Assembly (NCBI GenBank): GCA_000708835.1
Contig: DF236981.1
Span: forward strand, 186,001-250,000
Length of the DNA: 64,000 nucleotides
Source of the DNA: Klebsormidium nitens
Lineage: Eukaryota; Plantae; Klebsormidiophyceae
Reading direction: 5' to 3'
Each line of letters starts with the position of its first letter. The first letter of the stretch is position 1. A program made the position numbers and the translations under genes. Below the pieces are notes generated by a model that was not told the origin of the DNA, made no database searches, and was given only the letters and a program-made list of their open reading frames with translations. Positions 5,990-42,373 of the stretch are shown one piece after another.

Positions 5990-6638
5990 ATGGCTGACGG
6001 CCATGGCGCTCGTGCAATGCCGACCCCAATGCACAAAGCAACCACCGGCTGCCCAGGAGATCTTGCAGGACCGCAAAAAACAAGAACTAGATCGAGAGGC
6101 ATGTAATTGTACATATGAGGTTTACGAAGTTCACGAAGTTAACGAGATCAATCGAACGGATGCGATTGCTTGAGAGGAAAAGTCGTCATTACTGCCGAGG
6201 CTAAATCTGACCGTCGATCGTGAGCCTCTGAGCGCCCCTCTAGGCTAGTCTGCAGACGGCGGATGACGCGGACGGCGTTCATTCACTCATGCGCCTCTTT
6301 GCCAGTGAGTCTGTATCATCATAGCAGCGTCATTCTTTCATTCTTCCCAATCCAATTGTAAGATAATCTTGCCGTTGGCACCGGAGCATGTCAACTCTGC
6401 TGACGATCGCAACTCAGGCCTGTGCACTGATCCACAACTGCCTTGGAAAAATTAGCCGCGGACGCTTGCATCCGTCTATCTACAAGAGCAACACCTGGTA
6501 CCCAGACTTCGACCCGCCATTTGAGAAGATTCCGAACGCGAAAACGGCTTGCCTGAGCTGACTTCGCGCTCGACAACAAGCTTGTCACCTTGTGGTCGTT
6601 TGACCCTTCAATATCTGCTGTTTGCTTCAAACACGTAA

Positions 6639-9600
6639 TGGACGATCTTGACTTGAGCTTCAGCCCTTTGAAGAAGGAAGCGCCTCCTTCGGGCTCAGCT
6701 GCTTCCATCGAGGCTGGAGATGGGCCTCGACCGGGACCTGAGAAGAAGATGTTTCTCGGTGAGAGTTGATTACTGTGCTACCTGGGTGTGACAGTCGTGT
6801 GGCATGGGAAGTGACGGGGGAAGTGAAAGGATTGTTCATGCAGACGCATTAAAAAGGATCTCGAGCTCACGGATTTCACTACTGCGTTAGCGAATGAACC
6901 CCAATATATCTTCAAAATTTTGCATCCCGCATCTATCTTTGCAGACGATGAGCTTGGGGACGACTTCCTCTTCGACCTGCGGAGGAAAAGTGACATGACA
7001 TTCGAGCCTTCTCCTCATAAACCTGGAGCGATCAAGAAACTGGACGCGACAAAACAAGCTGACATGTTGTAAGTTCCAAAATTTTGCATAGAGCCTTGAA
7101 GCCCTGATATACAAGAAGTGACAGTCTTTGGAACGTGTATTGCAAGCCGCGATCATGTGGCGAAAAAAGCATTCATTTCTTTACTGCTGATTCGCAGGGA
7201 TTTTGACCTGACAGACTTCGGGGCATCCATTGGCAAAGTGAAGAATACCGCAAACTTCGATTGGACAGCAGACCTGGAGAAAGGCGGCGGCTTTGATCTT
7301 TTCAAAGCTTTTGAGATCCCAAGCTCCCCGGAGAAGTTCCGACCAGAAAACAGCCCGCACGTCCAAGCACTTCAGAAAGGAATCGAAGACTTGCCAGTCT
7401 TCAGAGACCCCACCGAAGGATCAGTGTAAGGCGAACTGAGATGTCTATTACGACAGCACATATGCTTGCAGAACGTGTCAACCTTTGAATGCAATTTAAA
7501 GCACCATGCAGGACCTTGTGCCACTTCCTATAATCTGTTCGAGTAGATTCAAAGATGATGAGATGTTTCAACTTATGTTGTGCAGGACAACTGAGAATCT
7601 GGAGAAAGAGTCGAACAGAGACCAGGAGCAAGTTCAACCGCTTGTGGCCCTAGAAGTGCGGAATGTTGATTCTGAGCTAGTGAAGAGAGGTGCCGCCTCT
7701 AAACAGCCTCCAGAAACAGGAACTCTTGAAGGAGAACACTCGAAGTTCGAGAAAGAGGAAGACAAGGACTGTCGCCAGCGGTCAGAAATCGACGACGTAT
7801 CGACACTAAGGTAGGTCAATTGCCAGTAGTTGCAATCAGAGTCCTTCGTTCAGCACTAATCACCCCTGCTACTATATATTGCTCGTTTGGCCTTTTCACT
7901 TGATCATGCCTGCCTCCTTACCCGTATGTCGCAATATTCAAAGGTCAATTCTACTGTCAGCAGGAAAGAGACCGGTGTTGTGGATGAAAAGGACGCAGAC
8001 AGAGGGAAGGCATCAGGTCCAAGCAACCCAAGCCACGAAGTGCCTGTCGTCGATGGAAGAATTCCAAACCCTGGCGAGACCAAACAGTCCACGGCGCGGC
8101 CTCCACTATCTCAACAAGTCAAGTAAGGCTGTCAACGGTACCCCAAGGAGACTGAGCTTGAAGCATTCTCAAAGCCTGAAAAGCACTTCGGACAGCCTGG
8201 ATGCGCATTTCTTAAATGGCGCCGGTGGAAAACGTGATCTGTCAAAGCGTTGTGCATGCAGGTCATCGATGGAGAAGAAAACGTCGAAAGATCTGTCTGC
8301 ATCGGTCGACACTCCAACAAGCAGTCAACCAGCCAAGTTCGAGTCCATCTCGCGGGCCCTACAGGTTCCCGTGCCTAATTCTTCCTCGCCGTCATCCTCG
8401 AAAGATAAAAACCTAATCAAGAAAGGCATCACCGTTTCTGGTCTGAGCCTGAGCAAGTCACAACCCCTATCGACAATCTTAGGAAGCAGGTTAAGCAGCA
8501 GCTTGGCCAATGCATCCAGCCGTCTCGCAACCGGTTCTCAGATGAAACCACCAGCTTCGGTGCCTGTGAAGGCTGGGCTTGCAGGTCCTCAAAGGTAATC
8601 AGCAATTTTTCCTGTTTCCAATTCTGTCGAGATTGGTATTGATGTCGAGGCTTTCTAGAATCTTGATAGCTTTGTTGCAGACAGCAATCTGCGGCTTTCA
8701 GGCTGCGCGCTGATGATTGCGTGCTGTGTCCAGGGCTCAAGTGGCGCCCGTGGTCGCCCAGACTTTGAGAGAAGACAAGAAGACAGAGCAGGAAAACCGT
8801 GGACCGGGAAGCTTGTCTGGGGGTTCTTCTCTCAAGCGTACCCTTCCTATGCCGGTAAGGTTGGAAAATGCGATATGTGGAGGATCTTGTTCTTGTCACC
8901 GTCTTACGTGACTGCAAGCTTTGCAACCTACTTGAGACAAGCGAGCGCAATTGTCACTGATCTGCTCTGTTAATCTGCAGGAAAGAGAGCCGAAGAAGGA
9001 TTCTCGACTTGATGTCAGCGAGACTTCCTCCAAGCTTCTTTCACCGAAGAATATTGGTCTTGGACGACTTCAGGTGAATCGTTAACTAGTTGCCCGTATT
9101 GCGAAGGTTCATAAGAATTGAACACTGAGCCCAGTAGTGGAAGGCACCGTGTGGAACATACATTTCCAGGCCTACTTGATGGTTTCACTTCATGCTGTTG
9201 TGCCACTGATATTGAACTCCTTCCTCTTTCTTGCTAGGCTGGCACATCTCCATTTGCTCGCAAAGTACTCTCGCCTTCCTCAGGACCGTTGAGAATCCAG
9301 GTGAAAGCAACCGAGCCTTTCGAGAAAAGAATATTTGGTGCCTTGTGAGTCGTTTTTCAGAGTCCAGACTGCTCGATCCCAGTATCCGCCTTTCCTGCTT
9401 AAACATGAACCTGCGAGGTGTATACATCGATTTGTAATTAAAACAGATCGGTCCTTCATCTCAGAGCTCCTTGCTGAAGCGGCCTTCAAGACAACATGAG
9501 GAGGATTACCCAAGAGCAACGTCTTTACCGGGTTCGGCGCCCAGTCTCGTCAGGTAAGACCTGCTCAGTGCCAGCAGCGGTTTATGTATCCTCTCATCGC

Positions 9601-14400: not shown

Positions 14401-17400
14401 CGCTAAAGTTCTCCACCTCACCTTGGTGGGTTCGCTCTCCTCTGGCACCGCATACGCCGTCCCCACGCAGTAATACGTCGCCGGGTCCTCGCTGAACGAG
14501 CAGCTTATGATCGCGCACCCCTGCTCGTCCTTATCCAGCGCATACGACCCCACAACCTCGAACGTCTGGTCATCCACCAACCGCACAAAGTTGCTCTCGG
14601 GCTCGTCTCCGGAATTGATGCTGTTGTATTTCACGGTGATGATCCCGAAAGTGCGCGACGGCTCTTGGTGCGCGATGCGGCGCGCGTGCTCGCCGAGCGG
14701 GATTGTGCGGATGTGCAGCTTCTGGATGTCGTCGATGGTGCCGATCGTGAGCTCGGACTCCATGCCGATGGCGAGGCTGTCGGGGAAGGAGGCGCTGTTG
14801 AAGGGGCACATGTGGTTCACCTGAGGAAGGGGTGCAATGTAATCAGGAATAGAGGGACAAGTCGAGACAGGTGAAGAAAGGGGAAGAGCAAACAGAAGAG
14901 ATGAGGAGGAGAAGACCCGCCTTCGAAAGGACGAGCTGTTGAAGAGGCAAAAGCAGTTCACCAGGGGAAATGAACAGGAAGGGATGCAAGATCCAGCAAA
15001 CATCTGGAATGTCTCGTCAAAGAACAGAAAACCATGAAGAATCAGCAATCGACTGAAACGTCTGTTCATGGGACAGGAAGGGTTCAGCAATAGCGAACCC
15101 GGGAGAGCAATGTTCAGGACTTTACAACCTCAACAGAGGTTAAAGGTCGAAGAGATGAGGGCGATAAGTACGGAGCTTCGGAAGACATTCTTACGCAGAG
15201 GCTGATAAGAGCGGCGTTGAAATAGCGGCGAAGAGAGCAGCGCCATTAAGAAGGAGGCATCGACGAGGTCCAAGAGGTTCCATCAAACGACACACTGGAA
15301 CCAGAATAACTGGTCTCGTCGAGATAAAGCACAGATTGTTTCTATAAAAGTCTATGCCGCGTTTGCTGGACGCGCTGTAGCACACTCACGCATCCGCTTT
15401 CCTACCAAGCGAGCGACTTCAGATGAGGCAACGTTTCTGTCCAACCAGAGTATACCGGCCTCGCGCCTTCTCTCACCTCCTTGAGGTTGACGTTGCTGTA
15501 GAGCAGCTTCTGGTTGCTGGAGTAGATGACCGTCGGGCGGTCCGACGCGGCGAAGACGTGCGTGGCGCTCTTGGACTTGAACGTCTTGAGCGAGATGGGC
15601 TGCGTGCCGAGCGAAATCTTCTTGCGGTCGGTCAGCTCGCCACTGGCAGGGTCCACACGGAAGTTGAACAAATGACCGTCACCAAGGGCAGCTAGCAGGT
15701 ATGGCACCTGGAAAAGAGAAGGATTTGATTGATAAAAGCGCTTGACAGAATGCTGACGTCACTTGTCGTTTGTGACGAGCGAGATCTTCTTGCGGTCAGT
15801 CAACTCGCCGCTGCCGGGGTCTACCCGGAAGTTGAATACATGGCCGTCGCCCAAGGCAGCAAGCAGGTACGGCACCTAAAAAGGGGGGGGGCAAGTATGG
15901 GGTGAGTAGGAATTGACGATTTGCTGACGTCAATTGCTTTTTGTGCCGAAAGAGATCTTCTTGGGGTCGCTCAGCTCGCTGCTGCCCGGGTCCGCCAAAA
16001 AGTTGAACAAATGGCCGTCACCCAAGGCAGCTAGCAGGTATGGCACCTCGGGAACAAAGGGAGATAAAAGATTGTTTTCGCTACGAACTCAGAGCCGGGC
16101 TTGATGCAGAAGGAGGGGAAAGCGCAAAAAACAGCTTGAGGGTCGATAGGGGGCGAGAAGATTTACTTACACCGCGGATCAATCACAGCGGTCTATGAAA
16201 GCGAGAAAGCCCCAGATGATTGGATTCGCAGCGCCGAACCGCCCCTGGCACAATTACGATGCAATCACAGCTTGCAAGAGGAATCCTCAACTTCATCTCG
16301 ACTAAAGAGCGTGCTTGGATGAGAAACGGACTTTGAAAGTACACCTAAAAAAGACACGCTCCGCATTTGTACACCCGTACAAACCGACCTGGGCACCTCC
16401 GTTATTCAACATGTATCGAGCGAACCTGTCCGCTCACCCCCTCAAAGGCGCAGAAGAGCACGGAGCGCGGGATGACCTCCCCCCCAAGCGCCACTTTCGT
16501 TAGCGGCTCCATCCCCGGCACTGAAAACACGCGCACGCTCATGTCGGTCCACATGCCCACCGCCGCAAGATTCGCCGCCGCGCCATCCCCCCCTAACGGC
16601 GAAATGTCCAGGCACGAAATCTCGTACTCCAGCTTCACGTGCTTCTTCTCCTGCAGCTTTCCGGGCTCGACTTCGAGATAGACAAGGTTCCCGCCCCCCG
16701 TCGCGAGCAGGATTTGGGACGCGTTCGCGGCGGTCACGTTGATGGAGTGCTCCGGGGGGGCGTGCCACTCGTGGACGAGCTGGCGCGTCGGCGCGGCCGC
16801 GAGCTTCAGGGAGGATGACGTAGCCTGGAAGAGATGACGTCAGCGCACGGTCAGCAACCGAAAGAGGGTGAAGAAATCGGCTTCGCAGCAGTGACGTTGA
16901 TCGAGTGCTCCGGGGGCACGTGCCACTCATGGAGGAGCTGGCGCGTTGGCCCGGCAACGATGACGTGTCCCGGAAGGGAGGTGACATTATTGCGAGGGTC
17001 GGCCGATGGATAGCTTGACGACCTTTTAATTCGACACTGGACAGGTGATGTCACTTAGGGGAAGCGAGACGCGGAGCAAGAACCCAGCATTAGAACCGAC
17101 GGAAGATCGTGTTCCAATTCGGGGAATCGGAATCCAATAGAGCAATTCGAGGACAACGCTCATTAAGCAACCGCGCTCGGAAAACAGAAGCAGTTTACTA
17201 CCTACATGAGACGAGCATCGACCCCCTCTATGTCATGCAAAGCACCCAAAAATGGATGGAGAGCTTGCACCAACGAGCACTCTCAAGTACCCTGCGCTTG
17301 TGACTGTCCAGCGAAACTGTCTTTCAGCCCATCCCTCAACAAAAGTTCCATACTTGTAAACCTCCCGATCCCAGCAGCTATTCATACAATTCCCAAATGA

Positions 17401-35733: not shown

Positions 35734-38700
35734 ATGATGCTTCGTAATCAGCTTACCACCACCTTGCTCATCCTTAGTAGCTTTCTCCTTATAAACCAAT
35801 CGGTACTTTGTACTGAAAATACAAGCAGACATAGTTTAGCCCCATTGGACGGCTACTTGAAAGAAGCACGCCAACAGGTGCGGAGGTTTCGTGCCTAAAC
35901 TCTTCTGAATCCCACATTGTAGAACTATGGCAAAATTGTCATATGAAAGTGATTCCATATGTGGACGTGCCTCGATGATAGGAACACCAACTATGCGAAG
36001 TGGTGGCTTGATTCGCAGGTTTGATTAAGTACTAAGTTTTGACCGAAACCTTAAACGATGGTTTAAAGGCACTGGGCTTGCAGGCAAATATGCTTTCTCG
36101 ATACTTCATCATCAATTCTCCCCATCGTTGTTGACAGAAACCTCAGAAAAATTAAGAGGATTCTTAAGGTTTCCCTGAACCCTTGCAAAGGCCTTGGTTT
36201 GTCCAAATGTAGAGCCATAACCCTCATGAAAAGGAAGAATATTAAGGGTTCATTCGCGAGGGAGAGAAGGCAGCTCGCACTAGCAAAGACAACGCTTCTA
36301 TTTTTCTCAGATCCGGTTCAATGATCCCAAATATGAAGCTACACTTGAAAGTCCAGCCCATTTGTAGTCTTGTCTACCTGGAGGATCATGAAATACACCT
36401 TCACCAGACTTTAGCTTCAACAAAGTACTGCCTCATGTACTTTTGCAGGATGTGGCATCATGGATCACAGGCATCCGGCGGGAGCTGCATCAGTACCCGG
36501 AGCTTATGTACGAGGTGAGGGAACCCTTGTCTTTCAAACTAGAGCCAACTTGTCTGGCGAGTTTCACCTTCATTGTTACGAATCTCCATGGATCGCCGCA
36601 GCTTACTCTGGCGTTCACAAATTTTGAATCTGCATGCTTGGTCACAAAACGCATTAACAACTCGCTTTCCAGTACGATCACCCACCTTTGACCAGGAGTT
36701 GTGAGCTTATAAAACCCTCAGGATTAGACAATTGATTGGATTTTCATTGGCTTACATGTGGCTGTCCGTTGGTGATGAAAATGAGCGCATCGCTTCGCAA
36801 AACCCTCGACCTCGCTGGTCAAAAAAAATGACGGTCCATTGCTTTTGAACCATGCACTTTCACCCTCAACAGGAAGTGCAAACGAGCGCCCTCATCCGCA
36901 AGACCCTCGACTCGCTGGGCATCAAATACAAGTACCCCCTCGGAAAGACGGGCGTCGCCGCAACATTAGGAACTGCAAATGGACCCCACGTCGCGCTGCG
37001 AGCCGACATGGACGCTCTCCCGATCGCCGAGGCTGTCGAGTCTGAGTTCAAGAGCAAGAACGAAGGGAAGATGCACGCGTGCGGTCATGACGGGCATACG
37101 TCCATGCTGTTAGGGGCGGCTCGGATGCTCAAAGCCAGGGAGAAGGAGCTCAAAGGCAAGGTGAGACCCGGTGTTCCGACACAGTCCTGTGCCTTCCAGT
37201 TGATGCTCAAATTGGGTCGCTCGTCAGGGTCTCAAGCTCTGATAATCGCCTGTGGGCATTTACGAAACAGGTAGCGAGGAACTTCTTGAATCTTTGAACT
37301 CGGGTCAAACGTTTCTCGAGAACTGGCGGACTGATGCTGTAAGATTTGGTCCTCTGTGGTTAAAGTGCGCCAGTTCCCCTGTGCCCGCAATTACTGGTCG
37401 TCTGATGAATCTCAGTACTAACCACGATAACCCCTGGTTTGCAGGTAACTCTGGTTTTCCAACCGGCCGAGGAGGGCGGCGCGGGGGCCCGCCTGATGAT
37501 GGACGAGGGCCTCTTCGCAGATGACAAACCGGACTTCGTTTTTGGGTTACACGTTGACCCCTCGCTTGAAACCGGGCGGGTTTCGTTAACACCCGGAACA
37601 GTGCTCGCAAGCTCAGGGGCGTTCATTGCCAAGATAAGCGCGAGTGGGAGCCACGCGGCCTTCCCACACCTGACGGCAGACACGATCGTCACAGCTTCGG
37701 CAGTAGTTGGAAGGTCAGCGAATTCCACTACCCTTCTGAGGACAACTCTGCGCGCTGTTGGTTGATACCGTTGGTCCTTTAAAAGGTCCCGGGATTGAAG
37801 TTTGTCTGGGGGTCGAGAAACATCATTTGGTCGTCAATTGACGTCCTTAGCAGATATGCGCAGTGGTGACGGGCTGCTCGCCTGGACTGCGATCCCTCTT
37901 TGTGCGCTGTTTTCTCAGCAACGAAAGTCGACAGTAGAAAAGTGAGTGTTTTCGGAAGCGATTAAAAGCATGAGATCTGTCAAAATGTCCTCAAGAAATG
38001 GCAACTTACTTTGGCTTTGCTTAACGAATATGAGAAAGGAACCGTACAGACGTGGAAGTTGGCTCAGCTTCGTATCCGTGTCGGGGTAAGTCTCGAAGGC
38101 TTTCGGCCCATAGCTTCTCTTCGTGTTACCGGCACATATGCCCAGCTCTCCCATTCGAAATCAATCAACGTTTTCTGGTTGACTCCACTGTTTTCGCTGG
38201 TTGGACTGAGTGCTTTGATTTCTTGTCGTCGTTGGTCCAGCTTCGTGAATTTAAGCACCTCGTCTTTCTGGTTCAGCCTGCAGACCCTGATTGCCCGGAA
38301 GCTGGATCCCCTCGAAGCGGGCGTCGTGTCCGTGACGATGATTCACGGAGGGACGGCGCTCAACGTGCTGCCTCCGGAGGTCGAGATTGGTGAGACTCGA
38401 AGCTCTAAGCCGCCTTTGCTAACCCGGGTACCTTAACCTCGCACCCAAGATGTTGCACGGGCAGTTCGCAATTCATAAGGTGCAAACTTTTACAAAAGTT
38501 GAGTTATATTCTACTTTCCCCCGCCTATGTCAGCATCATCGAATACCAGGTCGAAAAGAACATCTTGGGTGCAAGGTAAAGGGGCCCAAGTTCGCGTCCA
38601 GTTTCTTTCCCGTTCAGGATTCTCTGCTCAGTCTACAATGCCAACAGAGAGAGCTTACTTCAAGAGCCCGCTGTTCTTGAGAAAGTCCGAACGTGGTCTC

Positions 38701-40817
38701 GAGGAAATGGCAGTAATACGATGCAGTTTGCGCGAGTGGATATTCAAAAGATTGCTCTTGCCTCTCGTAATCTTGTCTAAAGGAAGCCTCAAGCAGAGAG
38801 CAAAGAACCCTAACTTGAGTAGCTCAGTCGATGGTCGTGCATCGGATCTGATGACGACTGCCACCTCAGGGTTGATCAGTCGGCGGTAGATAATGTGGGA
38901 GACCAATGACGGACAGTCTCGTCCGGGTGCTTCCGCAGGCGGAACGTTCCGTTCGCTAACAATGGAAGGGCACCACAAGCTGCAGCAGTGGATCGAGCAC
39001 ACCATCACTCAGCAGGTGAGGAACGTCGCCCAACTCTTCCTGGAAAGGAACTTTCTATTGACATTCCGTATCGACCGGACCCCTGCTCATTGGCCAGTCC
39101 TCTCCAGTGTCGGCCCCTTTGATCAGTACGGACAGTATTTGCGGACCGTGTCAAGCTCGTGATACCTAGCATAACTTGGAGAATCTCCTCTGGTACTGCG
39201 ATGATCGACGCCGTATGCAGACCGCACCAACCCGCGAACTTTCGAGTCGAAAGTCTTGTCGAAGACTCTTTTCAGCTTGACACCTCGTTAAAGCGCAAAT
39301 AGGAACGCGTCGCCCTCGTGTCCAGGCCGCCGTGCACGGGTGCAACAGCTCGGTCGACTTCCTGGAGGACCGCCACCCGTCATACCCCCCCACCGTGAAC
39401 GACGCTGCCGCCACGGCATATGCACGCAGCATATTGGAGCAGTGAGCTTCCACGTGCCTATCCCTGAAGACCTCCAGCGCAAGGCAACAGATTTAAATAG
39501 GTTTCCTCATCTCGATTAGCGTCCGAGGTCCTGAGGTCTGCGAGTTTGTTGAACTGCGGCGCCCTGCAGAGGGCGTCATTTCGCCATTTTAGGTTATTGC
39601 GGCTGCGTTTTTGAATCGTGAACTTGAATCGTGAACCTAGTCGCAGCGCCTCGTGCTATCTGGGGTGTAACCTGGCGACACAGGCAGTCGTGACACTGCC
39701 TTTCTGGTCGTTGAGTGAAACTAAATCTGCCCTTGCATACTTTGGGAAAGGTTGTTGACACTCACTTTTCACACGACTCTTGCAATCAAAGCGGTTCTTG
39801 CAGCATGCGGCGCGAAATGTAAACTCGCTGATAGGCTTCTGGAACGTTACTCGAGGAAGGTTCCTGTGCAGGACTCTGGGCCTGCAGAGCGTCTTCCCCC
39901 AGGCCGCCCCGGAGATGGCCGCAGAGGACTTCGGCTTCTTCTCCCTCCGCTTCCCGTCCTGCTTCTGGCTGCTGGGCACGAGACATAATACCTCCAAAAG
40001 TGCCGCACTTCTGCACACCCCAAATGTGAGTTTGTAGGTCCATCTCGCGTCTCTCAGTCCGGCTCAAGATCGTGTTTCTTACACTTTTTGCAGGGTCGTG
40101 GGGGCAGAAAATGCACTACCAGGCACCCCCTGGATGGGCGCGGAAGACTTTGGCTTCTTCACGCAGCGCTTCCCGTCGTGCTTCTTCATGCTGGGGGTCA
40201 AAAAGCCGGGGACGGACAGCGCAGCAAAGCTGCACACCGGAACGGTGGGTGAATAGTCTTTGGGACATTTTGGAAGCTTGCAAGCCGCTGGCGCTTGTTA
40301 CTGCAATTGTTCGCATGTTTAAATTTGTGTCGTATTGCAGGCTTGCCTGAGTTCACCTTCTAAGTCGAATCGGATTCGACGATCTGTTCCTCGAAGCTTC
40401 GTTTTAAATCTCAGTGATTGGGCTGCCAACTCTGGTCGTAAGCGGACTCAGGATTCGTCATCTGGATCCGATCTCGCGTTAGTTTTATGGTTCGGGCAGG
40501 CCTACGACAGGCAGTGAAATAAACACAGCCTCTTTGGCAGTTTAGCCCAGCTACTTTTACAAGTCTTTTTAAAGAAAGGGTCCGTCTCAAGTCAAAGGTT
40601 TCTTCCGAAATCTTCTTGCTTCTATTGCCTCAAGCCTGCCTTCGCTAGTCCTCTGTCCGCTCCGCTTTCTGCTCAGTTCAGTTCCGCTGTCCCCCTGCAG
40701 TTTGGTCTCGACGAAGATGCGCTTCCAATCGGTGCAGCGCTTCACACGGCGCTCGCAGAGCAATACCTCAAGTCGGAGACCGAGCGCCGAACATCCGACA
40801 AAAGAGAAGAACTGTAG
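35734..40817 (+). CDS. ILR1-like: M20D amidohydrolase, IAA-amino acid hydrolase ILR1/ILL-like, with signal peptide and KDEL-like REEL C-terminus
   Basis: IRRELHQYPELMYEE, ALRADMDALPI, MHACGHDGHTSMLLGAA, FQPAEEGGAGA, FGLHV, GGTALNVLP, YPPTVND, AEDFGFF, LHT and DEDALPIGAALH...DKREEL*; hydrophobic N-terminus LTTTLLILSSFLLINQSVLC. Confidence 0.95.
39872..40025 (+). CDS. M20 gene duplicated exon copy A (154 nt): TLGLQSVFPQAAPEMAAEDFGFFSLRFPSCFWLLGTRHNTSKSAALLHTPN
   Basis: GTGCAG acceptor, GTGAGT donor, phase 2 in and phase 0 out, no stop codon. Confidence 0.85.
40094..40244 (+). CDS. M20 gene duplicated exon copy B (151 nt): VVGAENALPGTPWMGAEDFGFFTQRFPSCFFMLGVKKPGTDSAAKLHTGT
   Basis: TTTTGCAG acceptor, GTGGGT donor, phase 2 in and phase 0 out, no stop codon. 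Confidence 0.85.
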
Positions 40818-42373
40818 GTCACATTTGGGATCACCAATAGCACACCGCAGACGGCTTGGACGAAATTGTAGATATACAACAGCGCTGTATTGTCATCAGC
40901 CAATTCTCGCGACTCCGTTCCGTGTAGATATGAATCTGCTGAAAGGATGCGCTTTCATTCGGTTGAGGTGTGAGGTTTGGCAAGGGGTTGCCGAGGTGTT
41001 TGATTGAAGTGAACTGCTGGCGTCCGGAGCTTGCGCTCAATGAAGTACATTGGAATGGGGTCACGTTTTGTTCGGTTTGGGAAGCTACAATCAAGCAGCG
41101 AGACAGGGCCCTGACTTCGAATGGCTGAAACGTGAATGTAGATTTGACATATGCATGTAGACTCAGACGCGGTTGCAACACTCGACTGTTTGTTACTATC
41201 ATTGCTCGGTACGTGCCGCGGGCCTACATGAGAAATCCGCCCTTGTCGTTTATGTTGCAAACATGGTCGGTGTGCACCCACCATATATGCGCATGGGGCG
41301 CTCATGATGTGTGTATAATCTCTAGCCAAATTGCAGATCGAGGCCCCACTGCCGGGCATGACAGGCACTCATGAGCGTAAATCTTTTCGAGCAGGATTAG
41401 CATGTCATCATGTATGTAGAAGGTCGAATTCAAATGTAGACAAGACGTTGCCATGCTCACTAGATGCAAGATCGGACCACTATAACGCAATCTTCCCCAC
41501 ATCATACCATGATGTACTATATACCTATGATCATGGCTGGCTGTCGGGTGCATGATGGTGTGGATTTTTTGGCGCCAGCGTGCTTGTCAGGCCCGCCTTG
41601 CGTTTGCCCAGGCTGATCCCCGAAATACCATTTTCAAGGGGCCACCATGCGTTCGAACTTACATGATAGAAGTATATATATGCCAGGTAACTCACCGTGT
41701 AGACCACAGCTTCAGACGAAATGCTCAAATAAGCGGGGACATCACGAGCGGCCTTGAAGAACTCATACCCTTTATGGTGGCAGCCATTTCAAGCTGCCCC
41801 AAGTCGCCCCTGCATTGCACTGGCAGCAAGTCGCCTCACGAACTAGCTGGGCCCAAACTTTTCATGTGCAGCTTGCACTGCGGCCCCGGGCTCTTTACAA
41901 TCCAGAACCTTTTAAGGTTAACCCGGCACATACCGGGTGCCTGAATCGCGAGCGTCAACTAGGTATAGGTAGGTAGAAGTGTTGGGTACTGACTCCTGAG
42001 TCTTTGACGACTTCTAGAATCCGAGGTTTATATGTCTAACCCAAGCACAGTTTATCTTCGACCTGAGATTTGGTTACATACCTTCTGAACCCAGTGGTTG
42101 TTGGGCAAGGTTGACAAGCTGTTGCAGTGCATAGAAGTGGTGGTGCCCTGCATTTGGTGGCATTGAATACAGGGGAAGGTATCCTTGTCAATGTTGGAGG
42201 TGGCGCGAATGCAGGAGATTCGAACTTTTTGACGAGCTCGCAGATGCTGATCGGTGCCCGATCGACATCCCAACTCCTTCTTGACCTTGCGGCCAGGGGG
42301 CGCTTTGAAAGTTTGCAAGTTCAAACAAGCCCACCGTCTGGTGCTGAGCCCCTGAAAGTCTGCAAACGTTGCG

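Follow-up and report, generated by a model that had tools for sequence, protein, structure and literature searches.

Klebsormidium nitens has two ILR1-like (M20D) amidohydrolase genes, and in one of them, which consists of nine exons, the eighth exon is present as a tandem duplicate. The downstream copy (E8b) is the default exon and the only version seen in mRNA. The upstream copy (E8a), judged by its sequence, is an open, correctly phased and protein-constrained exon which has been kept in at least three genomes. We favour, with somewhat better than even confidence, E8a being a selected alternative exon that is used rarely or conditionally. An either/or switch between the two copies is plausible, still unproven. 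The gene lies in a window (the whole stretch of DNA analysed) of 64,000 nucleotides, to which its coordinates refer.

Gene product and anatomy of the exon pair

The coding region and its parts are arranged as follows.

35734..40817, plus strand: coding region of the ILR1-like M20D amidohydrolase (E1-E7, E8a/E8b, E9), from the spliced and translated exon model
35734-35877, plus strand: E1, spliced exon model
36449-36514, plus strand: E2, spliced exon model
36873-37160, plus strand: E3, spliced exon model
37445-37713, plus strand: E4, spliced exon model
38277-38389, plus strand: E5, spliced exon model
38939-39015, plus strand: E6, spliced exon model
39326..39441, plus strand: exon 7 (E7), shared upstream exon, exit phase 2 (..GAG CA, then gt), from sequence and splice joints
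39442..39871, plus strand: intron E7-E8a, in observed mRNAs part of one 652-nt intron
39872..40025, plus strand: exon 8a (E8a), upstream copy, 154 nt, 51 codons, acceptor gtgcag/G, donor AAT/gtgagt
39907..39976, plus strand: repeat core in E8a, pairing with 40126-40195 in E8b
40026..40093, plus strand: spacer intron E8a-E8b, 68 nt, GT..AG, from sequence
40094..40244, plus strand: exon 8b (E8b), downstream copy, 151 nt, 50 codons, acceptor ttgcag/G, donor ACG/gtgggt
40245..40700, plus strand: intron E8b-E9, from joint 40244>40701
40701..40817, plus strand: exon 9 (E9), shared last exon, ending ...KREEL + TAG, from sequence, splicing and RNA

The deduced protein matches Arabidopsis ILL2 (1XMB_A) from end to end (E=1.6e-110; query residues 42-437 on chain residues 18-408) and passes TIGR01891 with 349 bits (cut-off 153.75). 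PF01546 is matched by E3 (58 bits) and E4 (41 bits), and weakly by E8a (15.5 bits) and E8b (18.4 bits). Together with a signal-peptide-like N-terminus and the C-terminal REEL, these matches bear out the identity as ILR1-like M20D enzyme proposed in the first-pass annotation. The Cys and His residues of HACGHD, the Glu of QPAEEG and the His of GLH are all visible in the ILL2 alignment, and the exon-8 His as well as the EDF motif, both 100% invariant in 108 homologues, are encoded by E8a and E8b alike. Metal binding by the conserved His, Cys and Glu residues is presumed from the M20 family in general. The public K. nitens protein P0157 ("peptidase M20/M25/M40 family protein"; precomputed domains PF01546+PF07687) is 100% identical in sequence to isoform B, the E8b form, and is the sole member of its own 90% cluster.

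The K. nitens paralogue (P0012) possesses a single exon 8, and the duplication is thus specific to the gene lineage studied here. P0012 ends with KEEL (L002 1-13523, K. nitens DF237420.1), and a GH3 amido-synthetase gene is located ~6 kb upstream of it; a gene for a conjugate-forming enzyme thus neighbours a conjugate-hydrolase homologue.

Sequence inspection and splicing in silico confirmed the adjacent paralogous exons of 154 and 151 nt, the 68-nt intron between them and their intact AG/GT sites, as first described. The upstream donor, previously placed after 39445, required correction, since E7 ends at 39441 (GGAGCA/gtgagc). The 70-nt repeat cores (39907-39976 and 40126-40195) have 79% identity, and the two peptides are ~50% identical, with the shared motifs already recognised (MxAEDFGFF, RFPSCF and LHT) retained in both copies. 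Both exons are entered in phase 2 and left in phase 0, and splicing in silico yielded open reading frames of 447 aa (E7+E8a+E9) and 446 aa (E7+E8b+E9). Neither exon length is a multiple of three (154 and 151 nt, remainder 1 in both cases), and inclusion of both exons or of neither therefore shifts the frame and misses the normal stop; translation then terminates within the last exon, 20 nt (both exons) or 187 nt (neither) beyond the normal stop, and the C-terminus is scrambled and devoid of the His. The frame logic of one exon per mRNA put forward in the first-pass annotation is thereby verified.

Among the acceptors of the gene, that of E8b has the strongest pyrimidine tract (pyrimidine fraction 0.75) and that of E8a the weakest (0.45). 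Candidate branch points in the 68-nt intron are compatible with steric exclusion or with its absence. Inverted repeats with the potential to fold into competing docking/selector RNA structures were searched for, and none is common to K. nitens and the related contig L001 (see below). The intron upstream of E8a harbours a perfect 13-nt tandem repeat (TTGAATCGTGAAC x2) at 39611-39636.

Exon 8 in transcripts

Contigs of four runs from four studies (seven studies were found) were placed on positions 38200-41300. The RNA nature of the runs is evident from the constitutive joints 38389>38939 and 39015>39326 (depth 177-425). Among the exon-8 junctions to be checked, those of the downstream copy were recovered in all four runs, i.e., 39441>40094 (depth 183-358) and 40244>40701 (depth 150-361), and the E7-E8a intron, E8a and the 68-nt intron are removed together as the 652-nt intron of the observed mRNAs. 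The contigs of the four RNA studies, which can miss rare forms, contained neither the joints of the upstream copy (39441>39872 and 40025>40701) nor that of joint inclusion (40025>40094), and no loose end was present at 39872 or 40025 in the four runs. Since assembled contigs drop rare variants, these results do not prove that E8a is never used.

Coverage of E8a derives from one type of unspliced contig only (39413-40123, depth 11-20). Its depth over E8a amounts to 4.5-6.5% of exon depth, with 0-7 in three neighbouring introns, and the E8a-bearing intron reaches 2-3 times the depth of adjacent introns, an indirect hint at use of E8a. In run X5, the unspliced contig terminates exactly at the E8a donor (40025), and positions 40026-40093 are without cover. 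Contigs from graph assembly terminate at a branch. The base following 40025 is G in the intron and in E8b, and T in E9; the contig end would fit a few E8a>E9 reads, which is only a hint. A contig of runs X1 and X7 connects an unrelated stretch of 130 nt to a point within intron 5 (loose end before 38425).

None of the collections searched (proteins; a metagenome scan with the exon-8 motif; the C-terminal 127 aa of P0157) contained an E8a-type protein or transcript. Querying proteins with E8a by itself returned no match, which is uninformative due to the length window (28-89 aa) and to a prokaryote-style gene caller which places a minus-strand ORF over the E8a counterpart (E8a') of relatives. 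The metagenome scan returned one close match, the contig L003 (Ga0315919_1007475, 1-1595), which is spliced and of E8b' type; its other matches are ~40-55% identical M20D homologues of apparently bacterial origin. L003 comprises 1595 nt in the order E7-E8b'-E9 and shares 95-99% identity with L001 in most exons; the visible mRNA of the relative therefore also uses the downstream copy. Though filed as a "metagenome" contig, L003 represents a completely spliced mRNA from a Klebsormidium-like alga, and its sample therefore holds eukaryotic transcripts. The actual either/or use envisaged in the first-pass annotation is unsupported so far: the four RNA studies, the metatranscriptome contig of the relative and the public annotation display E8b only.

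Conservation of E8a in related algae

The search among 1.8 billion representatives yielded as best match an exon-sized ORF, 86% identical to E3, on the 232-kb metagenome contig L001. Every exon of the gene is present on L001 in the same order, including an E8a-type exon (15022-15172) without stop and with intact AG/GT, a spacer intron of 67 nt and an E8b-type exon (15240-15390). Searching with the last 127 aa of P0157 led to a further contig of the same sample, L083 (L084 is identical in sequence), which displays the same layout with its E8a copy at 6599-6748; L083 and L001 are 82% identical across the alignable stretch of the gene and ~85% in introns. The length of the spacer intron is kept (68 nt in K. 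nitens, 67 nt in L001, 65-66 nt in L083), its sequence is not (interior identity 0.57, shuffle mean 0.56). L083 additionally carries a tandem second copy of the terminal E9 (7487-7603 and 8590-8706), ~1.1 kb after the first, with an intact ORF (...LREEL) and an acceptor that reads CAA rather than CAG; E9 is single in K. nitens and L001.

In a tree of the exons, E8a and E8a' are grouped (support 97/95) apart from the E8b copies and from the exon of the paralogue. Orthologous E8a copies share 73% identity, E8a and E8b within one genome 59-63%. The grouping of E8a copies across species implies that the duplication predates the split from the related algae and that gene conversion does not explain the similarity. 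Residues specific for each type are kept across species (E8a, TL..Q..PEM..FFS..LLG.R; E8b, VV..EN..PWM..FFT..LG.KKP).

Between K. nitens and L001, the exons are the only alignable DNA of the gene, with E8a among them. For this pair, NG86 omega values were 0.38 for E8a, 0.12 for E8b and 0.10 for the other exons pooled. Maximum likelihood estimates (GY94) amounted to 0.175 for E8a, a value similar to the 0.21 of E9, and to 0.06 for E8b and 0.03-0.05 for E3-E5, and the likelihood ratio test of E8a against omega=1 gave 15.3 (p=9e-5). The pairwise estimate for E8a versus E8b within K. nitens was saturated and is left out. Purifying selection on both copies, earlier suggested from K. nitens alone, thus holds against orthologues in two related contigs. 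Neutral divergence or loss of the unused copy in relatives, which would speak against a function, was checked as well: E8a is intact in L001 and L083, and its omega between K. nitens and L001 is below 1.

The more closely related L001 and L083 differ by a single synonymous substitution in the 151 nt of E8a', compared to 4.0% in E8b, 4.5% in the other exons and 14.8% in introns. At most one difference in 151 nt has a probability of P=8e-10 at the intron rate and of P=0.008 at the exon rate. A 42-nt indel immediately precedes the conserved block, which starts ~40 nt ahead of the E8a' acceptor. Alternatively spliced exons typically display such a combination of few synonymous changes between close relatives and an elevated omega.

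This conservation beyond that of constitutive exons, extending to synonymous sites and to the 40 nt upstream of the acceptor, could also indicate a role of E8a at the RNA level, namely as a conserved regulatory or decoy ("poison") exon which tunes the output of isoform B by competing for the E7 donor or by inclusion with E8b to give a frameshifted, useless product. The stronger retention of the intron hosting E8a relative to its neighbours, the contig ending at the E8a donor without sign of acceptor use and the lack of a productive E8a mRNA among the transcripts seen agree with such a role. Over the longer distance from K. nitens to L001, however, synonymous sites of E8a changed freely (pS 0.45), with amino acids being held at the omega given above. 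Moreover, an RNA-level role needs neither the invariant enzyme residues nor the exact phase and length class, yet all of these are kept. The form including both exons has its stop in the last exon and is, therefore, no obvious target of exon-junction-dependent decay, and the search for conserved complementary RNA arms was negative for K. nitens and L001. We regard a purely regulatory E8a as unlikely.

Equally improbable in our view is that E8a was functional in the ancestor and in the lineage of L001 and L083, and has recently fallen out of use and started to decay in K. nitens. The strongest constraint was indeed measured within the L001/L083 lineage, and the K. nitens E8a forms the longest branch of the exon tree (0.33). 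It carries somewhat more derived residues than the E8a' of the relative, including substitutions at conserved sites (G>A in MGAEDF, N>S, F>W) and an additional codon. Its acceptor is the weakest of the gene, and none of the four K. nitens RNA studies displayed an E8a joint. On the other hand, the ORF, both splice sites and the phase are intact in K. nitens, and E8a retains all nine residues that are 92-100% invariant among 108 land-plant homologues (G, M, E, D, F, F, P, G and H). Simulations of neutral drift along the K. nitens branch leave little room for a long neutral period: the probability of an identity of at least 0.727 was 0.0014 at 0.55 substitutions per site, and that of an open ORF with all nine invariant residues at most 0.0006. 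Since the only transcript of the relative is likewise devoid of E8a', the non-detection of E8a is not specific to K. nitens.

Against a profile of 108 land-plant ILR1-like proteins, E8a scored 27.8 bits in K. nitens and 39.7 bits in L001, the respective values for E8b being 33.5 and 36.9 bits; E8a thus fits the family about as well as E8b. The match to 1XMB was 22.9 bits for E8a vs 20 bits for E8b, and the Pro of the H[ST]P motif is present in E8a and lost from the K. nitens E8b. That E8a is a dead duplicate (pseudo-exon) within an intron, its likeness to E8b being a leftover or the product of gene conversion, would accord with RNA and annotation showing E8b only, but is strongly disfavoured as very improbable by its exon-like conservation amid flanking introns that are unalignable (K. 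nitens-L001) or 15% diverged (L001-L083), by its omega significantly below 1, by the closer similarity of orthologous copies than of copies within a genome, which opposes conversion, and by the different appearance of true decay, e.g., in the second E9 of L083 with its lost acceptor AG.

Proposed use of E8a and comparison with known systems

According to the preferred reading of E8a as a rarely or conditionally used exon, exon 8 of this K. nitens ILR1-like gene would have been duplicated in tandem long ago, leaving two usable versions of the segment that contains the EDF motif, invariant in the family, and the metal-binding His near the C-terminus. In the mRNAs seen, the E7 donor is joined to the E8b acceptor with its strongest tract, and the weakest acceptor, that of E8a, is skipped. 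As protein-level selection maintains E8a, some mRNAs are probably translated with this exon instead of E8b, be it at low abundance or in conditions or life stages that the samples did not cover. The reading frame would enforce the either/or outcome, given the scrambled C-termini without the His in the alternative forms, and the short spacer intron of conserved length, compatible with steric exclusion, may add to exclusivity. The predicted product is a second isozyme of ER type with different residues around the active site. More tentatively, and with less than even confidence, a conditional swap of the EDF/His exon may provide two ER-resident amidohydrolase isozymes, the rare E8a form of which would differ in acyl-amino-acid preference.

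Arabidopsis ILR1, ILL2 and IAR3 are ER-localised, the tail of ILL2 being HEEL (PMC4827090). The algal protein resembles ILL2 (1XMB/2Q43) over its full length, with M20 catalytic and satellite domains, and shares with the ILR1/ILL enzymes HACGHD, QPAEEG, GLH and the C-terminal H[ST]P, a signal peptide and an xEEL tail (REEL vs HEEL). Hydrolysis of auxin conjugates by the algal enzyme is putative. In contrast to land plants, in which the family diversified via gene duplication (seven genes in Arabidopsis), K. nitens has a duplicated exon in one of two genes. ILR1-like sequences of K. nitens already served as outgroups in trees of the family (bioRxiv 10.1101/2023.03.13.532257), and a literature search retrieved no paper on the present exon-8 pair.

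Conserved, rarely included alternative exons and "poison" cassette exons are similar in that one exon is the default and in that E8a combines a weak acceptor and a raised nonsynonymous rate with lowered synonymous change between close relatives. Unlike these, E8a keeps the catalytic residues, has an omega well below 1 and introduces no early stop. As the present case also shows, selection can hold a duplicated exon for long (synonymous divergence of about 1) that is unseen in standard RNA assemblies, and the invisibility of E8a in such assemblies calls for caution in annotation.

To our knowledge, few mutually exclusive exon pairs have been published from streptophyte algae. Pairs of this type originating from tandem exon duplication are known, e.g., from animal ion channels and from human ATE1 (exons 7a/7b) (PMC6071210, PMC7797038). 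E8a differs from them in that it, the upstream copy, occurs in no transcript seen and in that no docking/selector structures were found. Like these pairs, E8a and E8b are adjacent, homologous, of near-equal length and same phase, and flanked by intact splice sites; the frame is lost when both or neither are spliced in, and type-specific residues are conserved in relatives. The pair shows the structural features (homologous sequence, length, phase, splice sites, conservation) from which mutually exclusive exons are predicted. Use of E8a would mean that K. nitens diversifies a hydrolase of the hormone-conjugate family via choice of exon rather than gene duplication, and that one isozyme is missing from the annotated proteome. 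A conditional swap, if true, would provide an alga closely related to land plants with an exon-level counterpart to the ILR1/ILL/IAR3 gene-family expansion.
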